Shown here: positions 6,126 to 54,361 of the stretch, piece by piece
Position numbering within the stretch: position 1 is the first letter of the stretch
How the letters are laid out: every line of letters starts with the position of its first letter
IMG/VR virus record: IMGVR_UViG_3300032236_002285
Location: 1-64,000 of that record
Reading direction: 5' to 3' (one strand)
DNA: 64,000 nucleotides
Notes under the pieces: model-generated
Seen by the model: only the letters and a program-made list of their open reading frames with translations
Databases searched by the model: none
What the model was told of the DNA's origin: nothing
Translations under genes and position numbers: made by a program

Positions 6126-6890
6126 ATGAAACTTGTAAAATATTTTGAATTTAATCAACAAGATTTAGAACCTATTAAATCTTTTTATCTTAAAGAAGAA
6201 TTAAATCCTAGATTATGGGATGATTTTAAGTTAGATGATGAAGTAAGAGAAGAATTACTTACAATTGCTCAAGATTTTTATGAAAATGTTGAGGCTGGTG
6301 CTGATGTAGTTGATATAGTACTTGCTGGATCTTTATGTAACTATAACTGGTCTGAAAAGTATTCAGATTTTGATTTACATATTATTATTGATTTTGATGA
6401 TGTTGATGAAAACTTTGAATTAGTTGAGAAGTTTTGTGATTATGCTAAAAAGATTTGGAATGAACAACATGATATTAAAATCAAAGGCTATGAAGTTGAA
6501 ATAGCTATTCAAGATAATGATGATTTAGATAAAGCTATTGAAGGTGGTAGAATGGGTGGTGTTTTTTCTTTATTGAAAAATAAATGGATTAAAAGACCAG
6601 AAAGAATAGATTTTGAGCCTGATGAAAAGCTAATAGAAGAAAAATCTAAAACTATTATGATGTCTGTTGATGATATCGAAGAACAATCAGAAGAAGATAA
6701 ATATGAAGCTTTTGATGAAAAGATTTCAAAGGTTTGGAAGAAGATTAAAGATTTTAGACAAAGTGGTTTAGATTCTGAATCTGGCGAGTTTTCAGTTGGT
6801 AACTTAGTATTTAAGTTACTAAGAAGAAATGGGTACATTGGTAAAATAATGGAACTAAAGAGAAAAGTTTACGATAAACAATTTAAGTAA
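6126..6890 (+). CDS. Pol-beta superfamily nucleotidyltransferase with N-terminal CTS-like tag
   Basis: DIVLAGSLCNYNWSEKYSDFDLHIIID (GS...DxD motif), third acidic residue in YEVE. Confidence 0.75.
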   Translation: MKLVKYFEFNQQDLEPIKSFYLKEELNPRLWDDFKLDDEVREELLTIAQDFYENVEAGADVVDIVLAGSLCNYNWSEKYSDFDLHIIIDFDDVDENFELVEKFCDYAKKIWNEQHDIKIKGYEVEIAIQDNDDLDKAIEGGRMGGVFSLLKNKWIKRPERIDFEPDEKLIEEKSKTIMMSVDDIEEQSEEDKYEAFDEKISKVWKKIKDFRQSGLDSESGEFSVGNLVFKLLRRNGYIGKIMELKRKVYDKQFK

Positions 6891-6891
6891 T

Positions 6892-7587
6892 ATGGAAATT
6901 AAAATATCAGAAATAGAACAAGTATTCAAAGATGTCTTTGTTGCTGAAGAAGGTGTAGTAAATACAGTTGAATCTGTATATGAGATGTCAAGAGATGAAG
7001 ATTTCTACAAACTTGTTATCTCTATACATGGTTTATCAACTCAAGATACTTCAATTATACATACTAAGTTTATATTCAAAACAGACTTAAATAAAAGACA
7101 TCTTATTGAAGATTCTTTTATCTATCTATATGATATCAATTGTGTTTATCATAAGATAGAGTTTACAAATGTTGTAGACATGAAAAAGAAAATAGAAGAT
7201 ATTGTTGAATCAAAAAACTTTGGAGAGGATTTGCAAATTCTTTCTGACTTTATTGAAGCTCCAGCTATGTTCTTAAACTATTACATGAGAAGAGATAAGA
7301 TTACGGATTATTCAATATTTGATGTTGAGTATGAACCTAAGTTTAAAACAACTCCTTGTGATAAAACAACATTTGATTTTAAGATTAACATTAATAATAA
7401 TTATAAAATGGAACTATCTATACATAAAATAGATAGAGTTGATGAGGAAGAACTAGATACTTATAAGTTTCAATTTAAGTTTATGGATGAGATTGAAACA
7501 TTTGAAACAGATACTCTTAAAAACCTACACTTCTTTATTGGAGACCATATTGCTAAAATTTTAGATAGAAAATTAAAGAATAAGTAA
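6892..7587 (+). CDS. Hypothetical protein
   Basis: 231-aa ORF in operon, typical codon usage. Confidence 0.7.
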   Translation: MEIKISEIEQVFKDVFVAEEGVVNTVESVYEMSRDEDFYKLVISIHGLSTQDTSIIHTKFIFKTDLNKRHLIEDSFIYLYDINCVYHKIEFTNVVDMKKKIEDIVESKNFGEDLQILSDFIEAPAMFLNYYMRRDKITDYSIFDVEYEPKFKTTPCDKTTFDFKININNNYKMELSIHKIDRVDEEELDTYKFQFKFMDEIETFETDTLKNLHFFIGDHIAKILDRKLKNK

Positions 7588-8243
7588 TGAGATATCTTGA
7601 AAAATTTGTCAATTATTTAAATGAATCAACAGAGGATATAACCGATTTAACTAAAGAAGAGTTAGATGAGTTACTTATTCCTATTACAGATTTAGGTGTT
7701 CAATATACATTTTCACCACCAAGAGTTATCACGGATGGTGAATTTTCTGGATTCAAATCAATGAATATAGTTTTTAGAAACTCTTTTCAATTAGGACCAT
7801 CTGGTGGATATACTGAGCAAATTATTGATGATAAATTCTGGGACTTCTTAGATGAGTTAATAGCTCTTAAAAATCGTTTAGAAAGTTCTAGAGTTTCTAT
7901 TAATACTAACTGGAGACACCACATAGTTGTTACTTTTGTACAAAAAGCCAAAGTTGAAGGTGATTTATTTACAATACAAAAGTTGTATAATGATATGTGT
8001 TTAAGAACTAATGCCGCAAAGAGTGATTTTGTAAATAACATGACTAAGAGTTTAGATAAAGAAAATTTAAAAATTACAGTTAATTGTAATGGTTATAGAG
8101 AGGGTGCTTATACTGATAGAAAGTGGAATGGTCTTTTCAGAGGTATAGATTTTTCTAAATTTAATGTTGAAAAGGATATTACTGAAGATAGATATGGTAT
8201 TAAAAATGCTGTTATTACAATTACTCTTAAAAGTGAATCATAA
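7587..8243 (+). CDS. Hypothetical protein with CTS-like N-terminus (MRYLEKFVNYLNES)
   Basis: ORF coupled to the upstream gene through a TAATG overlap. Confidence 0.7.
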   Translation: MRYLEKFVNYLNESTEDITDLTKEELDELLIPITDLGVQYTFSPPRVITDGEFSGFKSMNIVFRNSFQLGPSGGYTEQIIDDKFWDFLDELIALKNRLESSRVSINTNWRHHIVVTFVQKAKVEGDLFTIQKLYNDMCLRTNAAKSDFVNNMTKSLDKENLKITVNCNGYREGAYTDRKWNGLFRGIDFSKFNVEKDITEDRYGIKNAVITITLKSES

Positions 8244-8280
8244 CATTTAATATATATGTTAATAAAAATATTATAGTAAG

Positions 8281-9720
8281 ATGTCTCATATATTATTAAA
8301 ACAAGTACCAACTTCAGCGATTACTGCACCTGCATCAACAGATGTTAAATTTTTTAGTAATTTTAACGATGGTGGTCTTTTGTATTATATGGATAGTTCA
8401 GGCAATCCGATGCCTGTTGGTAGTGGAGGGGGTGGTTCTACATATGTTCCAGTTGTATCAACAACATATGCTAGTTTATACTCTTTGTGTACTTCAAGTG
8501 GATTTGCTACAGGTTCTTATTATTTAATTAATGACTTTGAATCAATTTATGAACAGCCAGATTTTTATTGTGATGGTACTCCTAAGTCTTCCTTAGATTT
8601 AAAAGGTAAGCCTTCTGGTTGGGGATACCAACCTATTTTAGTAATGGCCACTTCTAAAAATTCTTTATCAATTGATGCTTATCAACCGCCTATCACTGGT
8701 GGTAGTTATTATGGTTTTAATAATGATAAAATTAAATATGATTTTTCTTTTAATAAAACAGAGTTTAATAATAACACTAAAGGTAGAATAACAGAAAGAA
8801 TAGATCAGTTTGGTAACAGAACTGATTATGACCATAGAGCTATTAGATTTAAAAGATATCAAAATTATACTAAAAATACTATTAAATCGGGCATTATAGA
8901 CTCATATAATTGCACCACTGGTGATTTGACTGGTGTTGGTACTTTTTTCCTATCCGAACTATCAGCTAATGATATTATTATTATAGATTCAATGTCTGAT
9001 TTAGGTTATAATATTGGATTAAAAGTTAGATCCGTAACAAATGATGTCATGGCTACTGTTTTCATCGATAGCTTATACTCTGGTAGTGTTCCAAGTGTTG
9101 TTGCTTTAAATAGTGGTACGACAATTACTCCTGTTGATTACAGCTTTGGTGGTAAAAATTATGATTATTATTCAACAACGGCTACCGGTGTTTATAATCA
9201 ATATAAGGAAGTTTATTTTGGACAAGGTGATAATAATGATTGTAATAAGGAAGTTTATACGTTTCAATTATCATATCCTAATTTAACATCAGGTGCTACT
9301 AATAATAAAATTGGCAATTACTCTCAGATTTACTTATCTGGTTCTACTAATAATGTTTTTATATTACCTAATAATGTTTTTGGTTCATCTTGTAATAACA
9401 ATGTTATTTTAGATAATTGTTATAACAATCATATTGGTGATGGTTTCTTTGATAATAATTTAGGTTATAATTTTAGTAAAAATTTAATAGGTGATAATTT
9501 CTCAAAGAATACTACTATTGATACATTTTCTTCTAATATTATATCTGATAATTTTAGATGGAATATAATACAAACAGGTATTTCAACCTATGATTTTACA
9601 TCATCAACACATGTTTATAGTAACTATACCTGCTATATGTTTTCAAATTCTTCGGGGTTTTCTAGATTGTCATATTATGACCCATCTGATGTATTGACGA
9701 TTGTTAATGTTGATGCTTAA
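8281..9720 (+). CDS. Virion/tail-associated protein with Asn-rich beta-helix-like C-terminal repeats
   Basis: About 11-residue repeats (NNHIGDGFFDNNLGYNFSKNLIGDNF); AATATATA upstream near 8249. Confidence 0.55.
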   Translation: MSHILLKQVPTSAITAPASTDVKFFSNFNDGGLLYYMDSSGNPMPVGSGGGGSTYVPVVSTTYASLYSLCTSSGFATGSYYLINDFESIYEQPDFYCDGTPKSSLDLKGKPSGWGYQPILVMATSKNSLSIDAYQPPITGGSYYGFNNDKIKYDFSFNKTEFNNNTKGRITERIDQFGNRTDYDHRAIRFKRYQNYTKNTIKSGIIDSYNCTTGDLTGVGTFFLSELSANDIIIIDSMSDLGYNIGLKVRSVTNDVMATVFIDSLYSGSVPSVVALNSGTTITPVDYSFGGKNYDYYSTTATGVYNQYKEVYFGQGDNNDCNKEVYTFQLSYPNLTSGATNNKIGNYSQIYLSGSTNNVFILPNNVFGSSCNNNVILDNCYNNHIGDGFFDNNLGYNFSKNLIGDNFSKNTTIDTFSSNIISDNFRWNIIQTGISTYDFTSSTHVYSNYTCYMFSNSSGFSRLSYYDPSDVLTIVNVDA

Positions 9721-9986
9721 TTCATAAAAGAAATAACCTTATCTAAGTTTTCTCTGTTGAATCCGTCTAATGGTTTTCCGCCACTTTTTAAGTAGTCTCC
9801 GTATAAGTTATTATACTCATCTATTGTGTAGAATCTATTATCTATCTCTGATAATATTACATTTGTATCATGAAAGGTAACAGTTTTGTTTTGTAATCCC
9901 GTCTCTCCATATGCTGGTCCAATTGGTCCTACCAATTCAGTACCAGATACTTCTTCATTAAACTGTTTAAATGATTTAATCTTCAT
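9717..9986 (-). CDS. Small protein with CTS-like N-terminus (MKIKSFKQFNEE)
   Basis: 89-aa ORF carrying the shared N-terminal motif. Confidence 0.7.
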   Translation of the reverse strand: MKIKSFKQFNEEVSGTELVGPIGPAYGETGLQNKTVTFHDTNVILSEIDNRFYTIDEYNNLYGDYLKSGGKPLDGFNRENLDKVISFMN

Positions 9987-10437
9987 TTTCCTTTTCTATT
10001 TTTTCAAAATATTCATCTTGTTCTTCTAATGAATATTCTCTTTTCTTTGTATTATATATTAAATTATAAAGGAACTTATCATGTAGTTTGTGATGCTCAT
10101 CATGAACCATAGTTATGGTACAAGTTTCATCTTCAAAGTTATTTTCTACTTTTATTATTTCCATTCCAAATTTACCATCTTTGTCATGTAAGTTGCAAAT
10201 AACTTTTATTTTTTTCTCTAATAACTCAAGCACTTTATTAAAAGTGGTGTTTTTGGAAAGATATAAAAAGTCTTTCATATCCTCTTTGTTAGTGGATTGA
10301 TATAACTCTAAGAAATCACGCTCTCTTTTAGTTAGTGACTTTTTTTTATAAACCTTTTCTTTTATCTTATTTAATTCCATCTCTTTAACAGATTCGTTTA
10401 GTAGATAATATTTAATAATTCTTTCAAATTTGTTCAT
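9976..10437 (-). CDS. Hypothetical protein (N-terminal ...YLLNES; short 'SLTKRERDFL' helical motif)
   Basis: 153-aa ORF; reverse-strand AATATATA near 10461-10468. Confidence 0.65.
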   Translation of the reverse strand: MNKFERIIKYYLLNESVKEMELNKIKEKVYKKKSLTKRERDFLELYQSTNKEDMKDFLYLSKNTTFNKVLELLEKKIKVICNLHDKDGKFGMEIIKVENNFEDETCTITMVHDEHHKLHDKFLYNLIYNTKKREYSLEEQDEYFEKIEKENED

Positions 10438-21124: not shown

Positions 21125-22258
21125 ATGAGACATATTAAAAAGTTCAATGAAACAAAAAAGTCAGAAAAAGTAAAAGACCAAGAGGTTCTTTTTAATGCTG
21201 AGGTTTTAGCTGATAAAGATGAGAAACCATCTTTTAAAACAGAAGTTGAAGACCAAGAAGAGGTTAAAAAAGAATTTGATAAGTTAAGAGGTAAAGTTGA
21301 GAAATTTGAAAACTTTATCATCGCTATCGAGATTGAACCTACTGATGAACTTGAAAAAGAAATAGAATCTGAATATGAAGAAGATAATGGTTGTGGTTGT
21401 TGTGATAACTGCACTGGTCAGCCTGGTTGTGATTGCGGTTGTGGTAACTGCACTTGTAGTGATGTTCAACATCCTGAAGAAGTTCAAGTTTTACCTGCTT
21501 CCCAGTTTGTTAACAATATGTTCGTTTTGCAGTTTTCTGAGAGTTTAAAGTTTCATTTAGATAATAATAAACCAATTACTGAAAATATATTCAGACCTGG
21601 TTCAGATGCTTTTTATGAAGTAATCAAAGAAGCAAGACAAATGTTTGATTTAGCTAAAGTTACTTTATGTGATGTTGATAAAGATATCTTTGAATCTACT
21701 GAGATTGGTAACTTTGCTATGTTCAAAGGTGAATTAGTTCCTTTAGATTTACCAATGGAAAGTATAGTTGAGACAAATCAACCAGCATTTTCTATACACG
21801 ATGTAACTCCTGATTTCAATTATGAGGTTATGGGTAAAACCGTTACAAATATTAAACCATTGGCTTGGACTAAAAATAAAGAGGCTTCTTGTATAACATT
21901 TGAAGGTGAGGTTGATGGTCAAACTTGTAAATGTAAATATGATGATGGTCAAGATGGATATGTATTTGAGGCTAAATATCAAGGAAAAGAAGTTAAATTA
22001 AACTACCCTATGAGAGGTGGTGCTAAGAAGTACCATGTTTTTGTGAAGACACCTAAAGGTAATGTTAAAAAGATTTCATTTGGTGATGTTCATGGTGGGT
22101 TAACGGCTAAGGTTAGTGATCCTAAAGCAAGAAAGTCATTTGCTGCCAGACATCAATGTGATATGAAGAAAGATAAAACTAAAGCTGGATATTGGGCTTG
22201 TAGAATTAATAAATATGGTCACCTATGGGGTGGCAAAACTTATCCTGGTTACTGGTAA
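21125..22258 (+). CDS. Multi-module protein: CTS-like N-terminus, Cys-rich segment, basic C-terminal domain (KSFAARHQC...AGYWAC)
   Basis: MRHIKKFNE; GCGCCDNCTGQPGCDCGCGNCTC; C-terminal domain resembles DUF6321-type phage proteins; AATATATA at 21089. Confidence 0.65.
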   Translation: MRHIKKFNETKKSEKVKDQEVLFNAEVLADKDEKPSFKTEVEDQEEVKKEFDKLRGKVEKFENFIIAIEIEPTDELEKEIESEYEEDNGCGCCDNCTGQPGCDCGCGNCTCSDVQHPEEVQVLPASQFVNNMFVLQFSESLKFHLDNNKPITENIFRPGSDAFYEVIKEARQMFDLAKVTLCDVDKDIFESTEIGNFAMFKGELVPLDLPMESIVETNQPAFSIHDVTPDFNYEVMGKTVTNIKPLAWTKNKEASCITFEGEVDGQTCKCKYDDGQDGYVFEAKYQGKEVKLNYPMRGGAKKYHVFVKTPKGNVKKISFGDVHGGLTAKVSDPKARKSFAARHQCDMKKDKTKAGYWACRINKYGHLWGGKTYPGYW

Positions 22259-22260
22259 TT

Positions 22261-22677
22261 ATGAAACACTTAAAAACATATCAAATATTTGAATCTGTTG
22301 ATAAAACATTTGTTAAAGATTTTTTAACAGATTTTGGCATACTTATGTCTCTTAATTTTAGTCAAATAACTAGAATGGGTAAAGATGCTGATGCTACAAA
22401 AGAGTTAACTCTTATGATGCAACAACTTAGAAAGCCAATAATAAATGGTCAAAATTATTTTGAATTTATTCAAGATAACATAAATAGTGTTTCAAATAAT
22501 CCTAAGTTACTTTCTACTATTTTAGGTATAGTAAGAGATTATTTAATCTATATAGAACCAAGAATTAAAAAGTTTGTAACTGATGAGCCATCTTCAAATG
22601 GTGTTAATTATAAAGAATCTTGGTTAAAAAGAATTGAAAAAATTAAAAACGACTATAAATTAATAGTAAGTCAATAA
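22261..22677 (+). CDS. Hypothetical protein with CTS-like N-terminus (MKHLKTYQIFES)
   Basis: Start moved to ATG 22261, directly after the upstream stop. Confidence 0.7.
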   Translation: MKHLKTYQIFESVDKTFVKDFLTDFGILMSLNFSQITRMGKDADATKELTLMMQQLRKPIINGQNYFEFIQDNINSVSNNPKLLSTILGIVRDYLIYIEPRIKKFVTDEPSSNGVNYKESWLKRIEKIKNDYKLIVSQ

Positions 22678-24166: not shown

Positions 24167-24967
24167 ATGATATATGATAAGAATTTCGTTTATTTCCTTG
24201 GATTCCTTTGGTCCGATGGTAATATTGAGAGATATAGAACAGTTTTGGAAATAGTTGAGGATGATGCTCTAGATATAGTTGAAGATATAAAGCTTATAAG
24301 TTTTCTAAATATTAAAACTATGAACCGTGTTAGAAAAAATAGAAGACCTCAGATGTCCATTTATTTTTGTGACTCTAAGTTCTATGATAGTTATCAATCA
24401 AAATATTTTATTGATAAAAGTGTAAAGGCACCGCTTGATTTACTATCTGATATACCCGTTGATTTGGTTAGGTATTTTTATCTTGGTCTTATTGATGGTG
24501 ATGGATGTTTTTATTTTAATGAGAAGAATAAATCAAGACAATTTTATATCACATCTTGTTATGATCAAGATTGGTCACATATAGAAGACTTATTTATATC
24601 ATTGAATATTAAACAATATGAGATTAGAAGAACAATTAATAAAAATGGAAATAGTAGTTCATATATAAGAATAAAAAAACATCAAGAAATAGAAATTCTA
24701 TATGAATATTTATATCCTATTGGATATGAGATAGGTTTAAAAAGAAAGTATAATAAGTGTAAAAGTATTGTTGATAATAAGCCTAAAAATTCATCTAATA
24801 AATCCAATATAGATACTGATTTGTTAATATCAAAAATAAACGAAGGTTTGGATATAATAGATATTGCCAACCATTTTGAGTGTAATTGGAGAAAGATATA
24901 CAATTGTTGTAAGAAAAACAATATATCTTATAATAGAGGTTTCTTTAAAAGAACTAGAAAAGTTTAA
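24167..24967 (+). mobile_element. Free-standing LAGLIDADG homing endonuclease
   Basis: YFLGFLWSDG and FYLGLIDGDG motifs; C-terminal HTH-like segment. Confidence 0.8.
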
Positions 24968-31354: not shown

Positions 31355-31915
31355 CTATTTTGATGTCTGACTTGACATCTTCTTGATATTATCCATCATA
31401 TTTTTTTCTACATCTTTCATTTTATCATCTAATGACTTTTGTGCTTCTGCTATATCTTTAACTAAAGAAGCTATAGTTGTCGTATTTGTCGATATTCTGT
31501 TGGTTATATCAGTGATTTTACCATTTACAGATTGTTTTGTACTGTCGTCGGTTATACTTTGTAGTTGACTACTAAAATCATCTTTTTTAACTTTATCATC
31601 AGCAATACTATTTTGAAGATTATCAACTTTTCTTTTAAGATTAGCAACATGTAAGTATTCAACTAAAAAAGGATTTTTAGGTGTTTTTTCATCGGCCTTG
31701 CCTATAATCTCATCAACCTTTATTTGTAAGTCAGCATCTGATTTTATTTTAAGATAAGCATTGTCTAACAAAGGTTTCTTTGTTTTGTATTCAGCCAATT
31801 GCTTTTGAGTTATTGATAACTCATCTTTAGCCATTTTAACATCAGGTTCGTCTGTTAGATTAATATCAAAGTCTGCTTCTTCTATAAAGAGTTTATATGT
31901 TTTAAGAGTTCTCAT
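31355..31915 (-). CDS. Coiled-coil protein with CTS-like N-terminus (MRTLKTYKLFIEE)
   Basis: 186-aa helical ORF. Confidence 0.7.
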   Translation of the reverse strand: MRTLKTYKLFIEEADFDINLTDEPDVKMAKDELSITQKQLAEYKTKKPLLDNAYLKIKSDADLQIKVDEIIGKADEKTPKNPFLVEYLHVANLKRKVDNLQNSIADDKVKKDDFSSQLQSITDDSTKQSVNGKITDITNRISTNTTTIASLVKDIAEAQKSLDDKMKDVEKNMMDNIKKMSSQTSK

Positions 31916-34797
31916 TATTTTTTAACTATTGATGTTTTGTTAGCATCGTTTGATGCTGCAATATTTACAAAGCCGCCATTTTTTGTTATTGAATTTGAGG
32001 CATTTGTTAATACAAATCTCCTAACTATATCTTTACCCTCTTTATCTTTTAATTTTTCCTGTAAAGTAAATATTGACTTAATATCAATTTCAGCCTCTTC
32101 TGATAATTTTGAAGATGCTGCTTTATTTTTACCCTCATCAAACTTAGTTATGGCTTTAATTGAATATTTACCACTTAACTTAAACTTACCATCTTTATCA
32201 ATAAGAGATTCTGGTTTTATTCTAAAAGCTGATATTATAAATTCCTTACCATCTTTATTTTTTTGATTTTTATTTAAACCAAATGGTAGATTACCACCTT
32301 CTAACTTAATAGAATTTCCCGATTCTGTTATGTATTTGTCAAAAAAGTACATACTTCTACAATATGAGATGTATAACTCACCATTTTGCAAGTCTTGTAT
32401 GTAGAAATATAATACTTTATTGTCATTTGTACTTGTTGCAAAGAAAGTACCTTTTAATTGTTCGTAGTTATCAAACTTTAATGGTTTTTCTGTAAAATTT
32501 AAGTTTCTAACCTTTATAGAATCTGCAATTTTACCATTTTCATTCATTTCTTTTTCTCCACCGATAGCCAACTTTTCGTTATCTACGGATGTACCAAAGT
32601 ATTTTTCAATAAATTCGGCTTGTTTGCCTTTCCCGGATTTATCAGTTTTGTATAAGGTATCACCATCAATCATATCATTCATGAATCTTAAAAGGTTCTT
32701 ACCCGCATCTTTTATTATGTTACCTTCTTCGGTTTTTAGTGTAGTCTCTTGTCTAAATATTTTTTGATATTTTGTATCTTTTTTAATATTAAGAACCGCA
32801 TCTTCCCATTGGTCAAAAATCGCATTATTTCTATATGGACCACCAGTAGAACCCGCGTTGTCTGGTGACCCACCGCCAAATGTTGTGTACTCTCTAAATG
32901 TTTTATTAGATACCCTTCCTCCTTGTCTGCCTGTTGGTATAACTTGAGTTGTATGTAATTTATATGCTCTATTAAAAACTTTAACTATTTCAATAATAGG
33001 ATCCATTCCTTGTATCACAATAGAATCGCTTTTACTAGCCTTGTCAAATGCTATACGAGCTTTTTCCATTTCACTCTTTGTCATTACAAAGCTTTTGATA
33101 TCTACATTTTTATCCCAATAATCTTTTATCTTTTGAGACATGATCATTTGAGTTGGTTCTGAAACCTCTTCAGTTTTATCGGTTGTTATTTTTTCCTCTT
33201 TAGAATCTACATCCTCGTCAGCTTCATTTATAAAGTCAAAATATCTAAATATTGATTTAGATTCTTTTTTTAATTGATTGGGTCTAACAGCAAATGTTCC
33301 ATTTGATTTGTCAGTTGCTACTGATAAAAGGTCTTTATTATCTAATTCTTTTCCTTTTTTATCATCAGATGTTAGATATTTTTTATCATCACCTGGATAA
33401 ACAACTTTATCCTTATCTACTGCAATAACATCTTTAGTCTCGCCTTTTTTATTGGTGTATTTATAATGCTTACCTAATTCAATATCATCTTCTGTTTTAA
33501 CCTCTGATTCAGTATTGGAATCTTTAGTTTCTTGAGACGATTTTAACTTTGGTAATAGTTCTTTTAATTTATCATATGAACTAATAAAATCTTTAATAGG
33601 TTGATTAGCTTCTGTTAGTTGAGCTGATAAGCCCATATCACCTTTGAATGCTAAAATAACATTACCAAATAATGAAATAGCCTTAGGTATGTCATTATCA
33701 GAATCTGGATTTAATTCTTCTTTAACAAGATCATCATGGCTTAATAGGTTCTTACCAATAGTTTGCTCATTCATAACTACTTGGTATCCTATTTTACTTA
33801 TAGTTTTTTTATATAGTTCTGCATTCTCACCGGATTCAGAGTTCTTAATAAGATCTTGAATTCTAGTAACCATATTAGAAATACCTGACTTAGTGTAAGC
33901 ACTTTCAACTTTTTTCCAAGCATTAATAGCTTTAGTTTCATTTGATGCTAACTCTGACTCAAATATTGGAAGAGACTCATTTTCATAAAAAAATCTTTCA
34001 GTTGTTACCTCTGCTTTTACAGGTTCTTTTGTATCAACTTTAGTTGTTTCTTTTTCATTTGGTTTAGCCTGAGTTGTTGATTTTGGATAAGTTATTTTAC
34101 CATCTTTTACAACATCGCATAAAGAAATAACAGATTTTAGTAAAGTAACTGATGTTTTGTAAAATAATTCAGATGTTTCACTTGATACCTCTGGCTTTTC
34201 TTCACTTTTTTCTTCACCTTCTGTTTCTACAGGCTTTTCTTCTTCTCCTTTTTTAAACTCATTTAAGAATTCTCTAAACTTTTTTAATTCTTTTATTAAT
34301 TTATCTAAATCACTCTTATCAATTGTTAATTCATCCGCTGGTGTTTTATTTTCAAAGTCTGTAATTTCTTTGATAGCGGTATCGGTTAGATTTTTTAACC
34401 CTTCTATTTCTTTAAGTGTCTCATCATCACTTTTACCTTCAAGTTCCTCAACTGAATTCTTTAACTCTTCTAAAAAAGCATATAGTGAAACTTTATTATA
34501 TCTAGCTTTATCTTCTTTTGATAAGCCAGATGCGTATGATCTACTTAATAAATCATCAAAAGCTTCTTGCAATCTTTTACCAACTTGCTTTATTTTAACT
34601 AGATTTGCACCTATTTTTGCTTTTCTGATGGCAGAGTTTATCAATCTACCAAGTAATGAGTCATTCCAAGGTATATCATTGGCAAATGGACCAGATTCAA
34701 TTTCTTCATTGATTGAATCATCTTTTATAGATATATGTTCATCGATCTTGATTATACTTCTTTTAAGGAATTCATCTCTATTACTAAGATACTTCAT
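31915..34797 (-). CDS. Large charged putative internal head protein
   Basis: Start at ATG 34797 (MKYLSNRDEFL); several x-N/F-E processing-like sites (SINEE, PIFES, DFINEA); reverse-strand AATATATA at 34821-34828. Confidence 0.55.
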   Translation of the reverse strand: MKYLSNRDEFLKRSIIKIDEHISIKDDSINEEIESGPFANDIPWNDSLLGRLINSAIRKAKIGANLVKIKQVGKRLQEAFDDLLSRSYASGLSKEDKARYNKVSLYAFLEELKNSVEELEGKSDDETLKEIEGLKNLTDTAIKEITDFENKTPADELTIDKSDLDKLIKELKKFREFLNEFKKGEEEKPVETEGEEKSEEKPEVSSETSELFYKTSVTLLKSVISLCDVVKDGKITYPKSTTQAKPNEKETTKVDTKEPVKAEVTTERFFYENESLPIFESELASNETKAINAWKKVESAYTKSGISNMVTRIQDLIKNSESGENAELYKKTISKIGYQVVMNEQTIGKNLLSHDDLVKEELNPDSDNDIPKAISLFGNVILAFKGDMGLSAQLTEANQPIKDFISSYDKLKELLPKLKSSQETKDSNTESEVKTEDDIELGKHYKYTNKKGETKDVIAVDKDKVVYPGDDKKYLTSDDKKGKELDNKDLLSVATDKSNGTFAVRPNQLKKESKSIFRYFDFINEADEDVDSKEEKITTDKTEEVSEPTQMIMSQKIKDYWDKNVDIKSFVMTKSEMEKARIAFDKASKSDSIVIQGMDPIIEIVKVFNRAYKLHTTQVIPTGRQGGRVSNKTFREYTTFGGGSPDNAGSTGGPYRNNAIFDQWEDAVLNIKKDTKYQKIFRQETTLKTEEGNIIKDAGKNLLRFMNDMIDGDTLYKTDKSGKGKQAEFIEKYFGTSVDNEKLAIGGEKEMNENGKIADSIKVRNLNFTEKPLKFDNYEQLKGTFFATSTNDNKVLYFYIQDLQNGELYISYCRSMYFFDKYITESGNSIKLEGGNLPFGLNKNQKNKDGKEFIISAFRIKPESLIDKDGKFKLSGKYSIKAITKFDEGKNKAASSKLSEEAEIDIKSIFTLQEKLKDKEGKDIVRRFVLTNASNSITKNGGFVNIAASNDANKTSIVKK

Positions 34798-42280: not shown

Positions 42281-42847
42281 ATGAAGCATATTAGAACATA
42301 TGAAAGTTATCGTGTTAAAAAGAATAGAGAAGAAATTATTAGAGAATCTGTTCTTCAAGTTAACGATATTTACAAAGTAAAGACAATGATTGATATTCCT
42401 CAATCTTTAATCAATGCTTATGTAAAAAAAGTAAAAGATACTACTGGTAAAAACTTACGCACGTTCTTTGGTGATGTTGATATTGCTGAAGAAATTGTAA
42501 AGTTTATTAATATGGATAACTTAGATGTTGATAAAATCCCTGGTGGTGCTTTAATGGGTGGTGGTCAATCACAAACTCAAACACAATCACAGGCTCAACC
42601 TCAAGTTCAAGTAGAAGCACAACCTCAAGCTCAAACTCAAGAAGCTCCTCAGGCACAAGCTCAACCAGCTCAAACTGAAGAAGCTCCTCAAGCTCAAGCA
42701 CCTGCACAAGGTGAATTTGAAGAACCTGCACAAGGACAAGCTCAAGCACCTGCACAAGGACAAGCTCAGGCTCCTGCTGAAGAGGAAGAAGCTCCAGCAC
42801 AAGGTGAAGAAGAAAAAGAAGAAGGTGAAGAAGAATTACCTCTTTAA
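42281..42847 (+). CDS. Protein with CTS-like N-terminus and Q/A/P/E low-complexity tail
   Basis: MKHIRTYESY...IIRES; AATATATA at 42248; terminator at 42870-42899. Confidence 0.7.
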   Translation: MKHIRTYESYRVKKNREEIIRESVLQVNDIYKVKTMIDIPQSLINAYVKKVKDTTGKNLRTFFGDVDIAEEIVKFINMDNLDVDKIPGGALMGGGQSQTQTQSQAQPQVQVEAQPQAQTQEAPQAQAQPAQTEEAPQAQAPAQGEFEEPAQGQAQAPAQGQAQAPAEEEEAPAQGEEEKEEGEEELPL

Positions 42848-43657: not shown

Positions 43658-44272
43658 ATGGCTTATATTAAAAAATTTGAGAGTTTTCAAAGTCAATCTA
43701 TATTGGTTATAGTTGATGTTCAGAAAAGCTTTCGTAAGTTTTTTTCAGAAATGTATCTGAATGAATTAAAGAAGTATTGTAAACAATTTGATATTGTTTA
43801 TCAAATTTTTGATAATCACATAGATGGTAAGAATGTGGATAAAGATTATTTATATGATGATGAGCCGATTATTCCTATTCATAAAGATCTTTATCATTTC
43901 CCTAATCAAAAAGAACTTATTGAAAAAAGATACAATTATAAAGTAGATGCTGACTTTTATAAGAAAATTCTAGATAAAGAAGTATATAATGATATTTCTG
44001 ATAAAGAAGATAAGAAATTATTAAAGAAAGGTGATATATTTCCTACTAAAGAATATACATACATAGTTTATATTGGTAATAACCATCAGTGGTATCACTG
44101 CCCTAAGAAGTTATATGAGTTATTAACATCATTAAAAGATAAAGAAGTTACAATAGTTGGTGGTGCTGATGGTGAATGTCTTGAAGACATTGTAACCACC
44201 GCTGAAAGTTTAGGCGTTAAAATTAAAAGAAATTACAAGTATATCTATACTGCTAGTAGTTGTCCGATTTAA
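43658..44272 (+). CDS. Cysteine hydrolase (isochorismatase/nicotinamidase-like) with CTS-like N-terminus
   Basis: ILVIVDVQKSF; VTIVGGADGECL; N-terminus MAYIKKFES. Confidence 0.6.
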   Translation: MAYIKKFESFQSQSILVIVDVQKSFRKFFSEMYLNELKKYCKQFDIVYQIFDNHIDGKNVDKDYLYDDEPIIPIHKDLYHFPNQKELIEKRYNYKVDADFYKKILDKEVYNDISDKEDKKLLKKGDIFPTKEYTYIVYIGNNHQWYHCPKKLYELLTSLKDKEVTIVGGADGECLEDIVTTAESLGVKIKRNYKYIYTASSCPI

Positions 44273-44760
44273 CCCTCGTCAGGCATATCAAAACAAATTC
44301 TTAAAACATCACCGTCAAATCCAACCGAACATTGTTCAAAGTTAGAAAAAGCTTGAAACCTCGGAACAATTTCTTCTTGAAGTAGTTTAAATATTTTTTT
44401 AATTTTATTATTATTTGCCATAATAATGTTCTTTAATTTTTCTAGATTTTCGATCTGATTGTCAACTGAATAGCCAAGTGGTGTATAAAGTAACTCTATA
44501 TTACCTGGTTCATCTGTTGGTGGTATTACTTCAAGTAAATATTTAGCTGTTAAGTAAGTTCCTTCTTCATCAACTTCCTCATCATTTATTTGAGGTATCG
44601 TTAATTCACAATCGTAAAAATAGTCGTTCTCTTTTGTATAGTCGTGAAATTCGCAGTGGAAATAATCAGATAATTCCATCATAATCTCTTTGAATGTTTC
44701 AAAATCACATTCTTCTCCTGAAGCTTCGTTGAACTTTTTTAAGTAAGTCATCTTTTTCAT
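44269..44760 (-). CDS. Acidic protein with CTS-like N-terminus (MTYLKKFNEA)
   Basis: 163-aa ORF. Confidence 0.65.
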   Translation of the reverse strand: MKKMTYLKKFNEASGEECDFETFKEIMMELSDYFHCEFHDYTKENDYFYDCELTIPQINDEEVDEEGTYLTAKYLLEVIPPTDEPGNIELLYTPLGYSVDNQIENLEKLKNIIMANNNKIKKIFKLLQEEIVPRFQAFSNFEQCSVGFDGDVLRICFDMPDEG

Positions 44761-45845
44761 AGTGTATCTATAAATTTATATAGTTTTTTAGTATATTCTT
44801 TTCTTTTGTATTCTGCATTTGTCATACAATAAGCAACAAAAGCAAAGTACTTAACTTTCTCTATTAGTACTTCTCTTGATAGTACACCACCAGCATATCT
44901 AAACTCAACATAATTATTGGATAGTTTTGTTATATTGAAGCCAAGATTCTTAAATCCGATATCAGTAACTTTTTTACTTATGAATTGATTTAATACAACT
45001 TCAGCTTCTTTTAAATTATGTAGGTCTAAAGATTTTAGCTTTAACTTTTCTTTATCAGTTAGTTTTCTCAAATATGGTATTAAAGAACCACAAAACTTGT
45101 TATTCATTCTCCAAGTCATGTCTTTGAATGTGTAGGGTGTTGTTTCTTTTTCTGAGAAGTCATTTAACAACATTAAACCTTTAATTGGATTCCACTCTAC
45201 TGGTTGGTTTGAACCAATGTTTATGTGTATACCAGTTCTTTCTGAGAAGTACCAATAATCTTGTTTTTCTAAATCATTATAAAAGTCATTTATCATCTCA
45301 ATTGATTCTGATAAACTTGGTATGTAAGTTTTTGGTTTAATTTCAATACCTCTATCTAAAGTAGAATCACCCACAAAATCAATCTTTCTATACCATTTTC
45401 TTGTAAAGTTAGGCATATGTTGTTTAACCATCCTTTTTAGATGTGAATAATTCTCCTCGTAAATAAATGATTTAATTGAGTTTTTAAGATGATCTATTAT
45501 TTCTTTTTCTCTTTCAGTTTCGTATTTATTAATATCAAACATCTCTTCAAATGTATTTAAATCAATAGATTTATCTTCAACATGATCATATAATTTATAC
45601 ATTAAATCATAAACTAAATCTTTTTCGGATTTCTTTCTTATTCTCATGTCTTTGTAAACAATATCTATAATATCTTCTACCGCATCTTCGTCAATATCTT
45701 TAAATTTAACCTTAATATTACTTCTATCTAATGTTTCTATTTCAAACTCAAATGCCACCGTGAAGTAATCGCTGAAGCTTTCAATCATTGCGATATCTTT
45801 AGGGTTTACTTCTTCAAATAAAGAGAATTTAATTAGATGTTTCAT
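44757..45845 (-). CDS. Putative amidoligase (COOH-NH2 ligase type 2) with CTS-like N-terminus
   Basis: AFEFEIE, DSTL..GIEI, TGIHINIG, VEFRYAGG; N-terminus MKHLIKFSLFEE. Confidence 0.7.
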   Translation of the reverse strand: MKHLIKFSLFEEVNPKDIAMIESFSDYFTVAFEFEIETLDRSNIKVKFKDIDEDAVEDIIDIVYKDMRIRKKSEKDLVYDLMYKLYDHVEDKSIDLNTFEEMFDINKYETEREKEIIDHLKNSIKSFIYEENYSHLKRMVKQHMPNFTRKWYRKIDFVGDSTLDRGIEIKPKTYIPSLSESIEMINDFYNDLEKQDYWYFSERTGIHINIGSNQPVEWNPIKGLMLLNDFSEKETTPYTFKDMTWRMNNKFCGSLIPYLRKLTDKEKLKLKSLDLHNLKEAEVVLNQFISKKVTDIGFKNLGFNITKLSNNYVEFRYAGGVLSREVLIEKVKYFAFVAYCMTNAEYKRKEYTKKLYKFIDTL

Positions 45846-45893: not shown

Positions 45894-46340
45894 ATGCCAG
45901 CTCGTTCAAAAACACAACAAAGATTAATGGGTCAAGCTTATGCTTACAAAACAGGTGAGTTAAAGTCAAAAGATATGGATCCAGAGTATGCTGATGAGAT
46001 AAAGAAATTAGCTAAGTCAATGACTGAGAAACAGCTAAGAGATTTTGCTAAGACAAAACATAAAAATCTTCCTGAGAAAGTAGAAGAAAAAATAAAAAGA
46101 TTTGATTCTTTTAATGAATCTATTGAAGATGGTATGAATGATAGAGTTGTCTATATAATAATAGACCAAGATATGCACAGTTATGAAGCTATTCTAGGTA
46201 TATATGACACATTTGAAAAGGCAATGAACTCTAATGTGTGGTCAAATAGAGGTATAACTCCTAATGAAGAAGGTGAAGGAGATTCTCTATTCATCTATAA
46301 AGAGTATGTGAACAAAGAACTACAACCAAAATATAATTAA
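45894..46340 (+). CDS. DUF3008-like protein with internal CTS-like motif
   Basis: MPARSKTQQRLMG...SMTEKQLRDFAKTKHKNLP followed by KIKRFDSFNES. Confidence 0.65.
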   Translation: MPARSKTQQRLMGQAYAYKTGELKSKDMDPEYADEIKKLAKSMTEKQLRDFAKTKHKNLPEKVEEKIKRFDSFNESIEDGMNDRVVYIIIDQDMHSYEAILGIYDTFEKAMNSNVWSNRGITPNEEGEGDSLFIYKEYVNKELQPKYN

Positions 46341-50239: not shown

Positions 50240-50605
50240 ATGTATTTAAATAATAAAGACCTTTATATTGAGGTAATCGTATCAAAAGCACAAGGCAAAC
50301 TAACAAGAAATGCTGAAAAAATGTTAGAACTACTTGCCAAAAAAACAATCAAAAAAATGAGATATTGGTCTAATGATGATAAATTAGACTGCTACCAATC
50401 AGGACTATTAGATATGTTCCAAAACTGGTATAACTTTAATGAAGATAAATCCGTAAATGCTTTCGCATACTTTACAGAGGTATTCAAAAGAGGAATCGCC
50501 AAAGGTTATAACGAACTTTATAAGAAGAAAGGTGATAACGAACACTTAATCAAATTAATTTCAATTGAAGGTTCAAACGATGGACAAGGACTTCACTCAC
50601 TCTAA
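50240..50605 (+). CDS. gp55: Late-transcription sigma factor (gp55-like, minimal)
   Basis: YLNNKDL start; NFNEDKSVNAFAYFTEV sigma region 2 motif. Confidence 0.75.
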   Translation: MYLNNKDLYIEVIVSKAQGKLTRNAEKMLELLAKKTIKKMRYWSNDDKLDCYQSGLLDMFQNWYNFNEDKSVNAFAYFTEVFKRGIAKGYNELYKKKGDNEHLIKLISIEGSNDGQGLHSL

Positions 50606-50757: not shown

Positions 50758-50773
50758 ACTTTATAATCATTTA

Positions 50774-52597: not shown

Positions 52598-53114
52598 ACT
52601 TTTTTAGATGTTGTTCAGTTATGATAATAAATTCATAGCCTTTCTTATTACACCAATTTATCATAGTCTCCCATTTTTGCTTATTTTTATAAGCCATTTT
52701 AAGGTCATATTCAAAGTTTTTTAACTTCTTCATTCCAGACTCTGGTACGTTAAGGTTGCCTTCATTTAAGTCTTGAACCATCTTATACTCTTTGAATGGT
52801 TTAACCTCTACAACGACTTGTTTAAGTACTCCATCTGAATTTCTCATCTCATAGTAGAAGTCAGGATAATAACAATGTTCTTTTATCTTAGTATCACCGT
52901 TATCAAAGTGTGTCATTTGATATGGTATTCTCATACACTCAGCACCCCACTTTGTAATGGTTTTATTATTATCTAACCAAGTCATTATTTTCTTTTCCCA
53001 AGAACTTCTGTAATAAACACCACCTTGTGTATTTAATTTAATTACTTTGTCTTTGTACTTTGGTATATAGTTGCCTTGATTATAGTTAGTGTTATTTGGT
53101 TTTGAATTTAACAT
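52587..53114 (-). CDS. gp4: Head completion nuclease
   Basis: YRSSWE, WGAE..IPY, YYPDF, VEVKP, NKQKWE, FIIITE. Confidence 0.85.
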   Translation of the reverse strand: MLNSKPNNTNYNQGNYIPKYKDKVIKLNTQGGVYYRSSWEKKIMTWLDNNKTITKWGAECMRIPYQMTHFDNGDTKIKEHCYYPDFYYEMRNSDGVLKQVVVEVKPFKEYKMVQDLNEGNLNVPESGMKKLKNFEYDLKMAYKNKQKWETMINWCNKKGYEFIIITEQHLKKFNL

Positions 53115-53130
53115 ACCTTGGATTAGTTTA

Positions 53131-53144
53131 TTTTATATATAAAA
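53131..53144. promoter_or_regulatory. 14-bp palindrome TTTTATATATAAAA, putative bidirectional late promoter
   Basis: Lies in the 44-nt gap between divergent gp4 and gp2. Confidence 0.55.
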
Positions 53145-53158
53145 GAAAATAGATTTCC

Positions 53159-53854
53159 ATGGGTGAATTAGTAGATAGAGTCGGACTAAGAATGTTAGTT
53201 GATGGTGATGGGTTAGTAGATAACTTCAAAAACAATTCATTATACTTCTATGATAAATATCAAAAATCAGATAAAGATGTTAAAGCTGTTGATGTTAAAG
53301 ATATTTATCCAGGTGGCTTTTATCACTTTCATTATTTAGATGATTCTAATTGGATGAAATATTCACCGGTATTTATTACCAACTTTAAGAAGATATCAAA
53401 TCAAATAATAATATTTGGTGTAAATTTTAATTTTATTCCACTAGAGATAAGAGCTTACTTATTTGATAAATTTATAAAAGAAGAAGATTTTGATAAAGAT
53501 AATTTATTAAAAGTTAACTACGAGGGAATGTATTCTGAATTAATTAAATATGGCTTTGAATATGCTTTAGTTGAGTATAATGCTATACAAATAAGATTAG
53601 TACATAAAATAAGTATGAATCTTGTTCCTAGATTTATAATGTCAGCACACCCTAAGAATAAATACGACCCTGCTAAGTTATTTGATATATGGAAAGCTAA
53701 AATAGGTGATAAGAGTAAGAGAAATCAAGAGATAATGAAATCAATGATAGATGATTTTTATGACGTTAAAGGTGAGATTAATGAGAAGTATGTTTTATTA
53801 AAAGACCATATACAAAGAATACAGAATAGTATGAAAAAATATGGTGGTGGATAA
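53159..53854 (+). CDS. gp2: DNA end protector
   Basis: PGGFYHFHY...SPVF...FGVNFNFIPLEIR; adjacent to gp4. Confidence 0.65.
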   Translation: MGELVDRVGLRMLVDGDGLVDNFKNNSLYFYDKYQKSDKDVKAVDVKDIYPGGFYHFHYLDDSNWMKYSPVFITNFKKISNQIIIFGVNFNFIPLEIRAYLFDKFIKEEDFDKDNLLKVNYEGMYSELIKYGFEYALVEYNAIQIRLVHKISMNLVPRFIMSAHPKNKYDPAKLFDIWKAKIGDKSKRNQEIMKSMIDDFYDVKGEINEKYVLLKDHIQRIQNSMKKYGGG

Positions 53855-53887
53855 TAATATATACACTATAAAAAATTAAAACTCTAA

Positions 53888-54361
53888 ATGAAACATTTAA
53901 GAAAATTTGAAGAACTTCAGTATTCTACATATATGAAAGCGGCTGATAAGATGCAGTCTTATGGTCAAACTGGTAAATCAGAGGTAATGAGAAAACATGC
54001 TAAAGATATCTCTAGAAAAGAGATAGATGAGATGACATTTGGTATATTAGTTGGTAATGTAAAAGAGTTTCCAAATGCTAAGCTTCAAACAGCTAGACTT
54101 TTTAAATCAGCTTCTTCTTGGGTTTTACAAGCTATTTTTAATTCTAATGAAAATACACATAGTATAACTTGTAGTGTTTCAAATAAAGGTGAAATTACCT
54201 GGTCAAGTGGTAATAAGTTCATCAATAGAAAATCAGTTGCTAAATTTCAACATTTAGTTTTATTACTTGCTAACTACCAACCAGATTTTTTAACATTCTT
54301 AAAAGATAATAACCTTAAATCTGAAGATTTAAAATTAGTGTCAAGAACATTTTATATCTAA
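53888..54361 (+). CDS. Hypothetical protein with CTS-like N-terminus (MKHLRKFEE)
   Basis: 157-aa ORF; AATATATA upstream near 53856. Confidence 0.7.
   Translation: MKHLRKFEELQYSTYMKAADKMQSYGQTGKSEVMRKHAKDISRKEIDEMTFGILVGNVKEFPNAKLQTARLFKSASSWVLQAIFNSNENTHSITCSVSNKGEITWSSGNKFINRKSVAKFQHLVLLLANYQPDFLTFLKDNNLKSEDLKLVSRTFYI

Follow-up and report, generated by a model that had tools for sequence, protein, structure and literature searches.

Why do otherwise unrelated genes of a giant uncultured phage start with the same short peptide? This question was raised by a preliminary description of a 64,000-nucleotide stretch of DNA (positions 1 to 64,000 of IMG/VR record IMGVR_UViG_3300032236_002285; hereafter, the window). 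It proposed that about 12 unrelated proteins carry a portable N-terminal tag resembling the capsid-targeting sequence (CTS) of phage T4, and that this tag, removed after Glu by a gp21-type protease, serves to load many proteins, enzymes included, into the prohead for delivery at infection. To investigate this proposal, the window was analyzed together with the complete genome of a related 634-kb phage (LR745206) and with sequences of further relatives.

Occurrence and position of the N-terminal tag

All eleven N-termini listed in the preliminary description were found in the sequence at their positions, and the observation of a shared N-terminal motif was confirmed. The strict pattern ^M[KRAT][HYT][LI].[KT][FY], generally followed by a Glu, occurred at 8 of 65 called gene starts in the window, or at 9 when the start at 44751 was used. 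Based on N-terminal composition, 0.007 occurrences were expected, while shuffling of residues 2-13 within each protein gave a mean of 0.008. When the initial Met was omitted from the pattern, it occurred 11 times in about 20,000 residues, 9 of which were at an N-terminus. In an independent test, a position matrix trained only on LR745206 separated nine window starts (scores 3.9-18) from all 468 other Met positions (score at most -1.1; Table 1). Four or five additional genes carried weaker versions of the tag; those at 6126, 9986 (-), 10437 (-), and 34797 (-) were real but degenerate or register-shifted. Two internal copies, in 45894..46340 and 31915..34797, were also confirmed. The reported absence of the motif from recognizable tail, replication, and metabolic genes was confirmed for the window.

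The number of about 12 proteins given in the preliminary description greatly understates the system. In LR745206, 84 of 907 called genes (9.3%) carried the tag, almost always at the first Met. Of 38 strict hits, 36 were at the first Met of their ORF, and a related pattern was 126 times denser in the first 9 residues than elsewhere. In 93% of the tags, the first Glu was located at position 8-12, in three discrete registers, and the residue following it was most often Ser. The tag is an extreme N-terminal element of 8-13 residues.

Table 1. Features of the window that bear on the N-terminal tag. A slash marks the putative cleavage position; matrix scores refer to the LR745206-trained position matrix.
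Position	Strand	Feature	Size (aa)	N-terminus or motif	Observations
6126..6890	+	Weakly tagged gene	254	MKLVKYFEF	Matrix score -2.0; orthologue reads MKLNKFYEF; hits phrog_36119, of unknown function
7587..8243	+	Tagged gene; tag 7587-7625	218	MRYLEKFVNYLNE/S	Strict pattern; score 9.4; LR745206 orthologue reads MKHLTQFFDYIKES; no Pfam or PHROG hit
9717..9986	-	Register-shifted tag	89	MKIKSFKQFNE/E	
9976..10437	-	Degenerate tag	153	MNKFERIIKYYLLNE/S	N-E-S at residues 14-16
21125..22258	+	Tagged gene; tag 21125-21151	377	MRHIKKFNE/T	Strict pattern; score 13.7; TAATATATA at -37; only the C-terminal part hits phrog_7595, of unknown function
22261..22677	+	Tagged gene; tag 22261-22293	138	MKHLKTYQIFE/S	Best matrix score in the window, 18.0; start just after the stop of the upstream gene
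31355..31915	-	Tagged gene; second gene of the operon that continues into the tail sheath gene	186	MRTLKTYKLFIE/E	Strict pattern; score 9.7; orthologue reads MKYLKKYKIFLEAD at 42% overall identity
31915..34797	-	Weakly tagged gene; first gene of the sheath operon	960	MKYLSNRDE; internal tag-like IFRYFDFINEA at residues 516-526	Score -1.1; TAATATATA at -32
42281..42847	+	Tagged gene	188	MKHIRTYE/S	Strict pattern; score 15.9; TAATATATA at -34; weak hit to phrog_6015, ssDNA-binding, E=1e-4
43658..44272	+	Tagged gene	204	MAYIKKFE/S	Strict pattern and matrix; 1187 metagenomic homologues; AF2 model poor (pLDDT 59), tag unstructured
44269..44751	-	Tagged gene	160 (from the Met at 44751)	MTYLKKFNE/A	Strict pattern; score 5.6; an upstream ATG at 44760 would add MKK
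44757..45845	-	Tagged gene	362	MKHLIKFSLFE/E	Strict pattern; score 12.3; orthologue 39% identical
45894..46340	+	DUF3008 domain (residues 3-63) fused to an internal tag-like sequence and a roughly 70-aa body		KIKRFDSFNE/S (residues 66-76)	Pfam PF11450, E=5e-12
50240..50605	+	gp55-like late sigma factor, candidate reader of the TAATATATA promoters			phrog_234, E=4e-6; 92% identical to the LR745206 orthologue
53888..54361	+	Tagged gene directly upstream of the portal gene	157	MKHLRKFE/E	Strict pattern; score 16.4; own TAATATATA at -33
54435..56162	+	gp20-type portal protein			PF07230, E=4.7e-59; TAATATATA at -33
59876..62038	+	Prohead protease fused to a scaffold; presumed enzyme that removes the tag and core that the tag would bind	720	About 12 repeats of YSEY[LI]AEN	phrog_207, E=1e-31; weak hit to PF03420 Peptidase_S77; 27% identical to T4 gp21, with GEFDHP and VSSRAAG aligned to the catalytic His and Ser motifs; five N-E-S sites against 0.5 expected
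62115..63809	+	gp23-type major capsid protein		Propeptide ends ...WMSEMAEYHSINE43/NA	PF07068, E=4.5e-27; aligned with T4 gp23; site conserved across six relatives

Selection on the tag and diversity of the tagged proteins

A preferred 5' coding sequence for efficient initiation on AT-rich, often leaderless, mRNAs, in a host that does not rely on Shine-Dalgarno pairing, could in principle generate such a motif. Consistent with this RNA-level explanation, many TAATATATA motifs started at -13/-14 from the ATG, which implies leaderless or near-leaderless transcripts, and most tag residues had A/T-rich codons. However, synonymous codon choice in the tags did not differ from that of untagged N-termini for K, Y, L, N, I, S, and T, and differed only marginally for F, E, and H. 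Moreover, residue order mattered, as shown by the within-protein shuffles, tags also occurred on genes inside operons that overlap the upstream stop codon, and the conserved His, Thr, Glu, and Ser are not encoded by A/T-only codons. An RNA-level or translation signal was therefore considered very unlikely. Instead, these results indicated selection at the protein level: orthologues changed tag residues but stayed within the pattern. Among the best 120 of the 1187 metagenomic homologues of 43658..44272, nearly all listed N-termini retained M-x-[YF]-[LI]-K-[KT]-F-E-[SN], while about a dozen began at what look like upstream start calls.

The claim that the tagged proteins are otherwise unrelated held. 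No pairwise BLASTP hit between tagged proteins of the window was better than E=0.001 in a tiny database, and the 84 LR745206 proteins, after removal of the tag, fell into 79 BLASTP families without detectable similarity, with lengths from 63 to 1284 aa. Alternatively, the tagged genes might be one very old, heavily diverged paralogous family, of which the N-terminus, for example a structural helix of a shared fold, is the only part still recognizable. The occurrence of tandem arrays, which suggests duplication, a few detectable paralogous pairs (5 small clusters), and degenerate tags on some 'untagged' paralogues are in line with this possibility. However, between orthologues the tag diverged as fast as the body and yet stayed within the pattern. 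In addition, the tag was attached to a copy of the capsid N-arm in one protein and appeared downstream of a DUF3008 domain in another, both of which imply shuffling onto unrelated bodies. A single ancient family is therefore regarded as improbable.

The tagged proteins were small, acidic orphans. Only 1 Pfam family hit the 42 longest tagged proteins, against 36 families in 42 length-matched untagged proteins. No tagged protein had a recognizable enzyme domain, and the inclusion of enzymes among the cargo, as claimed in the preliminary description, was not supported. Tagged bodies had a median pI of 4.8, against 5.5 for untagged proteins, and a net charge of -0.05 per residue, with -0.13 per residue over residues 11-40.

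Gene organization and the upstream promoter-like motif

According to the preliminary description, almost all tagged genes follow a late promoter or lie in an operon preceded by one. This claim was partly confirmed. Exact TAATATATA occurred 23 times in the window, against 4.6 expected, and was found within 80 nt upstream of 7 of the 13 tagged or weakly tagged genes; the others had a one-mismatch copy or were located inside operons. In LR745206, the motif was found within 80 nt upstream of 34 of 84 tagged genes, against 112 of 823 untagged genes (odds ratio 4.3, p=1e-8). The same motif preceded the portal, gp15-like, giant 1943-aa, and sheath-operon genes, but also untagged and non-structural genes, so that late timing is not established. 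Of the 84 tagged genes, 40 had a tagged neighbor, against 15 expected, an organization that recalls the variable internal-protein loci of T-even phages.

The head module and similarity to the T4 capsid-targeting sequence

Consistent with the involvement of a T4-type mechanism, the window encodes a T4-type portal, a gp23-type capsid protein, and a gp21-family (S77) protease with conserved catalytic His and Ser motifs, fused to a C-terminal repeat region that is scaffold-like (Table 1). A T4-type terminase, gp15, and a gp55-like sigma factor were also present. Sequences of the T4 CTS type are located at the extreme N-terminus of the precursor and are about 10-19 residues long. The T4 CTS has the sequence MKTYQEFIAE (PMC8442874), in which targeting depends on hydrophobic or aromatic residues at positions 4 and 7, and processing on residues 8 and 10 (Mullaney and Black 1996, as summarized in PMC9026906). 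When genes were selected only by M[KR][YH], positions 7 (2.18 bits, F/Y in 80 of 95) and 4 (1.85 bits, L/I in 85 of 95) were the most constrained. The most constrained positions of the tag are thus the T4 targeting residues, although their role in targeting is inferred here from sequence alone.

The end of the tag (Φ-N-E-S) matched conserved, predicted sites in other head proteins. Φ-N-E-[SNA] was conserved at the end of the capsid propeptide (I-N-E/N-A) and just after the protease domain (L-N-E/S) in six related phages, in which [LI]-A-E-N scaffold repeats were also seen; these sites were predicted rather than mapped. N-E-S was about tenfold enriched in the protease-scaffold protein. The tag of an 84-aa LR745206 protein aligned residue for residue onto the end of the capsid propeptide, followed by a copy of the mature capsid N-arm (E=9e-11). 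T4 shows the same relation, with …FGSFLTE/A in gp23 and …YQEFIAE/ in the CTS. The residue at P3 of the tag was F, L, I, T, or Y; it was hydrophobic in the F-N-E and K-[IL]-F-E registers, but not in the F-E register (24 of 84 tags), which does not fit the Φ-x-E rule of gp21-type sites (L/I-x-E).

A function of the tag outside the capsid is possible but less likely. In this view, the tag would be a docking helix for a common hub, chaperone, or compartment in the infected cell, or a recognition signal or degron for a protease that times the activity of many small host-takeover proteins. The tagged set indeed looks like typical phage early or host-takeover genes (small, acidic, orphan, and in arrays), and a share of about 9% of the proteome is easier to accept for a regulatory tag than for cargo. 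Moreover, the cultured relative PTm1 has the same fused protease-scaffold and the same capsid site, but showed no such tag in the 50 kb examined. However, the correspondence with the T4 targeting residues, the match with the predicted capsid and protease-scaffold sites, and the association with a promoter motif shared with portal and tail genes argue against this alternative, for which no hub was identified.

A proposed role in loading of the phage head

Based on these results, the motif is most likely a capsid-targeting and cleavage tag of the T4 CTS type, expanded in this megaphage lineage to roughly a tenth of the proteome. This interpretation is favored with moderate confidence. In the proposed mechanism, tagged proteins are made together with head proteins and their N-terminal segment, M-K-[YH]-[LI]-K-x-[FY], would bind the scaffolding core via hydrophobic residues at positions 4 and 7, as in T4. 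Since the tag resembles the last stretch of the propeptide of the capsid protein, the cargo would use the same handle as the capsid protein itself. After closure of the shell, the gp21-family protease would cut after the Glu at position 8, 9, or 11 (…F-N-E/S, …I-F-E/S) and free the mature protein inside the head, from which it would leave with the DNA at infection. The cargo would consist of dozens of small, acidic, fast-evolving orphan proteins, plausibly host-takeover or anti-defense factors. The interpretation in the preliminary description was partly supported: a portable, T4-CTS-like tag for loading of cargo into the prohead remains the best-supported explanation.

The sequence analysis demonstrated the motif, its strict N-terminal position, protein-level selection, the unrelated bodies, a T4-type head module with an intact protease, and matching conserved sites, themselves predicted, in capsid and scaffold proteins. 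In contrast, binding, cleavage, packaging, injection, and cargo function are inferred for this uncultured phage. A share of about 9% of all genes is far more than any known packaging tag serves, and the AF2 model gave no structure for the tag. More tentatively, and somewhat less likely than not, megaphages of this clade may pre-load their heads with a library of 80 or more different small acidic proteins, about a tenth of the coding capacity, each addressed by a T4-like tag that mimics the end of the capsid propeptide. The virion would then deliver a large, rapidly evolving set of host-takeover or anti-defense proteins along with the DNA, and the tag would be a sequence-only predictor of injected proteins in uncultured giant phages.

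With the exception of phage G, megaphages of 0.5-0.7 Mb have not been cultured and most of their genes have no known function. If the tag is a capsid address label, it assigns a fate (packaged, processed, and injected) to about 9% of the genes of a whole clade from sequence alone, a prediction that can be tested in the laboratory without culturing the phage. It would further show that the T4 CTS principle is old and can scale from a handful of proteins to dozens, and would offer a second, differently specified tag-and-protease pair for loading foreign proteins into phage heads. It would also help to explain why such phages need so large a head, and what a large part of their orphan genes is for.

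Comparison with known systems

The closest known system is the T4 CTS. Both tags are located at the extreme N-terminus, are about 8-13 residues long, have Lys at position 2 and hydrophobic or aromatic residues at positions 4 and 7, end in Glu followed by a small residue, sit on mutually unrelated proteins, and resemble the end of the propeptide of the capsid protein. The phage also encodes a gp21-family protease, a scaffold, and gp20 and gp23 homologues. However, the consensus differs (MK[YH][LI]Kx[FY] with three Glu registers, against MKTYQEFIAE), the preferred P2 residue is Asn, the protease is fused to the scaffold, and the tag is carried by about 84 or more genes rather than a handful. The putative cargo also differs from the T4 internal proteins in the narrow sense, which are small, highly basic, and DNA-associated, whereas the tagged proteins are acidic.

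The giant phages phiKZ, 201phi2-1, and SPN3US likewise pack many different proteins in the head, use a gp21-related protease that cuts after Glu, and have propeptides of head and ejection proteins that are thought to target proteins to the prohead (PMC5694885). However, those propeptides are mostly longer than 100 residues and share no common N-terminal motif, their cleavage motif is S/A/G-x-E, which does not match the P3 residues of the tag, and only about 8-20 proteins are processed. In encapsulins, which share the HK97 capsid fold, and in bacterial microcompartments, a short, portable terminal peptide on unrelated cargo docks onto the inside of a self-assembling protein shell. These are cellular compartments, whose peptides are usually C-terminal (encapsulins) or amphipathic helices of about 18 residues (microcompartments), without proteolytic removal or delivery to another cell. 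In the Dar system of phage P1 (DarA, DarB, Hdf, Ddr, Ulx), anti-restriction proteins are reported to be incorporated into the head during assembly and injected with the DNA (PMC9024508; PMC12810830). There, incorporation follows an ordered dependency among specific proteins, rather than a common short N-terminal tag.

Genomic context

The AT-rich window (about 29% GC) is the first 64 kb of a 481,145-bp contig from JGI metagenome 3300032236. Its nearest public relatives are the uncultured huge phages LR745206 (634,780 bp) and LR756502 (642 kb). Bases 6,000-64,000 were syntenic with LR745206 161-220 kb, with protein identities of 35-92%. The window encoded a T4-type morphogenetic core, in which a gp20 portal protein, a gp23 major capsid protein and a 720-aa prohead protease fused to a scaffold were accompanied by a T4-type large terminase, a gp15-like sheath stabiliser, tail sheath and tube, a clamp loader, endonuclease VII and a gp55-like late sigma factor. 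Probable mobile or nuclease genes were interspersed in this structural region. One of these, a protein starting MIYDKNFVYFLGFLWSDGN, resembled by eye a LAGLIDADG-type homing endonuclease; the other was the endonuclease VII homologue, located between the portal and protease genes.

A very long Gly-Ser-x triplet repeat (…SGSSGSSGTSGNSG…) in a collagen-like G-X-Y register ran off the start of the window. Its GC content was 39%, against about 29% elsewhere, it had no counterpart in LR745206, and it may represent a fibre or decoration protein. ORFs listed on the other frames and strand of this region were shadows of the repeat.

Coordinates of the features discussed in the text
Feature	Sequence	Coordinates	Strand	Identification
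Gly-Ser-x repeat	window	1-2680	+ (frame 1)	
Weaker or register-shifted tag	window	6126 (start)		
Weaker or register-shifted tag	window	9986 (start)	-	
Weaker or register-shifted tag	window	10437 (start)	-	
Weaker or register-shifted tag	window	34797 (start)	-	
LAGLIDADG-like protein (by eye)	window	24167-24967		
DUF3008 domain fused to tag-like segment	window	45894-46340		DUF3008, residues 3-63
Portal gp20	window	54435..56162		PF07230, E=4.7e-59
Possible degenerate tag, 131 aa	window	58552-58947	-	
Endonuclease VII homologue	window	59059-59691		phrog_1035, E=8e-13
Prohead protease-scaffold	window	59876..62038		phrog_207, E=1e-31; weak PF03420
Major capsid protein gp23	window	62115..63809		PF07068, E=4.5e-27
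TAATATATA motif, examples	window	6112, 36370, 46748 and 47775		
Tagged copy of capsid N-arm, 84 aa	LR745206	93266..93520 (L003:44266-44520)		
Second copy of capsid N-arm	LR745206	554784-555284		

Occurrence of the N-terminal tag

All eleven N-termini listed in the preliminary description were present in the sequence, and its observation of a shared N-terminal motif was thereby confirmed. The strict pattern M[KRAT][HYT][LI]x[KT][FY] started 8 of 65 called genes, or 9 when the Met at 44751 was used. In comparison, 0.007 occurrences were predicted from N-terminal composition, and shuffling of residues 2-13 within each protein gave 0.008. Because this pattern had been fitted to the window, a position matrix was trained on LR745206 only and used to score every Met of every window ORF. 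Nine starts scored 3.9-18.0, while the best of the other 468 Met positions scored -1.1. Four further starts carried weaker or register-shifted versions. A 131-aa protein starting MILTREIEIKINES, with N-E-S at residues 12-14 but without the canonical first seven residues, may represent a further degenerate tag.

To assess the scale of the system, the complete LR745206 sequence was analyzed in pieces (L001-L014) and 907 genes were called. Of these, 84 (9.3%) matched M[KRN][YHT][LIV]xx[FY], which indicated that the system is much larger than was originally thought. This count is a lower bound, since several ‘untagged’ paralogues carried the tag after a mis-called start or carried degenerate forms. 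Of 38 strict hits, 36 were located at the first Met of their ORF, and a related pattern was 126 times denser in the first nine residues than elsewhere. The 735-kb phage LR756501 showed a looser version (…LKTYKTFEN…), while few tags were seen in the sampled stretches of LR756504 and LR756500. In the cultured relative Tenacibaculum phage PTm1, whose capsid protein is 29% identical, no tag was found in the 50 kb examined, and a literature search yielded no open paper on its virion proteome. Literature searches also found no earlier description of this tag in huge phages.

Conservation at the protein level

Synonymous codon choice inside tags matched that of untagged N-termini and gene bodies for K, Y, L, N, I, S and T and differed only marginally for F, E and H. 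Tags of orthologous proteins differed in residues but stayed within the pattern, as illustrated by MAYIKKFES and MKYIRTYES in proteins that were 72% identical overall, and by MRYLEKFVNYLNES and MKHLTQFFDYIKES. Among the 120 closest of 1187 metagenomic homologues of the tagged protein starting at 43658, nearly all listed N-termini kept M-x-[YF]-[LI]-K-[KT]-F-E-[SN], while about a dozen began with what appeared to be upstream start calls. These results indicated that the motif is conserved at the protein level rather than at the nucleotide level; a role as a translation signal was considered very unlikely.

Properties of the tagged proteins

After removal of the first 14 residues, the 84 tagged LR745206 proteins fell into 79 BLASTP families, and the tagged proteins of the window showed no mutual similarity. 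The alternative that they represent a single diverged paralogous family was regarded as improbable. Their lengths ranged from 63 to 1284 aa, with a median of 168. Pfam and PHROG searches gave essentially nothing: the 42 longest proteins yielded a single Pfam hit, to a DUF, and a single weak PHROG hit, whereas 42 length-matched untagged proteins hit 36 Pfam families, including PhoH, DnaJ, RNA ligase, deformylase and glycosyltransferases. No tagged protein had a recognisable enzyme domain, so that the proposed presence of enzymes among the cargo was not supported. The tagged proteins were more acidic than the remaining proteins (median pI 4.8 against 5.5), most strongly just after the tag. They were also clustered, with 40 of 84 having a tagged neighbour, against 15 expected.

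An AF2 model of the 43658 protein, built on 26 homologues, was poor (mean pLDDT 59; tag residues below 50), and a Foldseek search against the PDB gave no hit with E<0.5. An isochorismatase-like identity, suggested by its ILVIVDVQKSF motif, was unsupported. In another window protein, a DUF3008 domain was fused in frame to a tag-like KIKRFDSFNES and a body of roughly 70 aa, as if a tagged gene had been joined to an upstream gene. The internal tag of this protein, which had no orthologue in LR745206, could act as a cleavage site.

Upstream promoter-like motif

The motif TAATATATA occurred 23 times in the window, against 4.6 expected, and was located upstream of the portal, gp15-like, giant 1943-aa and sheath-operon genes and of many tagged genes. 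In LR745206, it was found within 80 nt upstream of 40% of tagged genes and 14% of untagged genes (odds ratio 4.3, p=1e-8). Its start positions relative to the ATG fell into two classes, at -13/-14 (61 cases) and at about -28 to -36, of which the first implies leaderless or near-leaderless mRNAs. In view of the gp55-like sigma factor, a late promoter, as proposed in the preliminary description, is plausible. However, one-mismatch copies also preceded replication genes, being found upstream of the clamp-loader and endonuclease VII genes, so that late timing was probable but not established.

Relation of the tag to the predicted prohead protease sites

To examine the anatomy of the tag, genes were selected on residues 1-3 only (M[KR][YH]; 95 genes, against 18 expected). 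The most constrained later positions were 7 (F/Y in 80 of 95, 2.18 bits) and 4 (L/I in 85 of 95, 1.85 bits). In 93% of tags the first Glu occurred at position 8-12, nearly always in one of three discrete registers at 8, 9 or 11 (F-E, F-N-E and Y-K-[IL]-F-E), and was most often followed by Ser.

The protease domain was 27% identical to T4 gp21, with GEFDHP and VSSRAAG aligned with the T4 motifs that hold the catalytic His and Ser. Directly after this domain, all relatives had [LIV]-N-E-[SA], which in the pairwise alignment was located opposite ITES in T4 gp21. The scaffold part contained about 12 tandem 14-residue repeats of YSEY[LI]AEN[LV]DKNI, each with an [LI]-A-E of the T4 site type, as well as further N-E-S sites, giving five N-E-S in 720 aa, against about 0.5 expected from the window's rate. 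The repeats were followed by a His/Glu/Asp-rich block that contains two CGPM motifs (residues about 470-545), which may bind metal. The protease-scaffold fusion was conserved in LR756504, LR756501, LR756500 and PTm1, while the repeat array was clearest in LR756504 and LR756501.

The N-terminal region of the capsid protein was homologous to that of T4 gp23. However, a MAFFT alignment placed T4 Glu65 opposite a region of the megaphage capsid protein without a Glu, so that the T4 cleavage site could not be transferred. The predicted site INE43|N is instead based on its conservation across relatives and on its being the last Glu of the propeptide region, in the segment …WMSE[YM]AE[FY]HSINE|NA, which was conserved in six relatives, including PTm1. 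The commonest tag ending, F-N-E-S, is therefore the site type predicted for the protease of this lineage. In addition, an 84-aa LR745206 protein aligned from its first residue onto capsid residues 30-85 (E=9e-11), with its canonical tag (…KKFIE-NA) on the propeptide end (…HSINE-NA), followed by a copy of the mature capsid N-arm (GMGAV…AQP…LAG…GSGD). A second small LR745206 protein carried a copy of this arm after a leader of roughly 45 residues that ends in LILE|T, while the window contained no such copy apart from the capsid gene itself. These two proteins might be capsid-arm mimics.

The interpretation in the preliminary description, that the motif targets proteins to the capsid, was partly supported: it remains the best explanation, held with moderate confidence, although it rests on analogy and on predicted sites. 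Whereas the motif, its N-terminal position and its conservation at the protein level were established by the sequence analysis, binding to the scaffold, cleavage and targeting to the head are inferred in the absence of experimental data. The unprecedented share of the proteome, the acidic cargo, the lack of a hydrophobic P3 in the F-E register and the absence of the tag in PTm1 within the examined 50 kb argue against this reading. A docking or degradation signal unrelated to the capsid is a less likely, but possible, alternative.

The T4 capsid-targeting sequence (CTS) is MKTYQEFIAE (PMC8442874). Suppressor-based substitutions of amber codons at positions 2, 4, 7 and 8 of the IPIII CTS placed targeting mainly at residues 4 and 7, and processing at residues 8 and 10 (PMC9026906, summarising Mullaney and Black 1996). 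The megaphage tag therefore has Lys2, a hydrophobic residue at position 4, an aromatic residue at position 7 and a terminal Glu in the same layout, while differing in the share of the proteome that carries it. T4 shows the same relation as that between the megaphage propeptide end and tag, between the end of the gp23 propeptide (…FGSFLTE|A) and its CTS (…YQEFIAE|). It is inferred that the tag mimics the scaffold-binding, protease-released end of the capsid propeptide.
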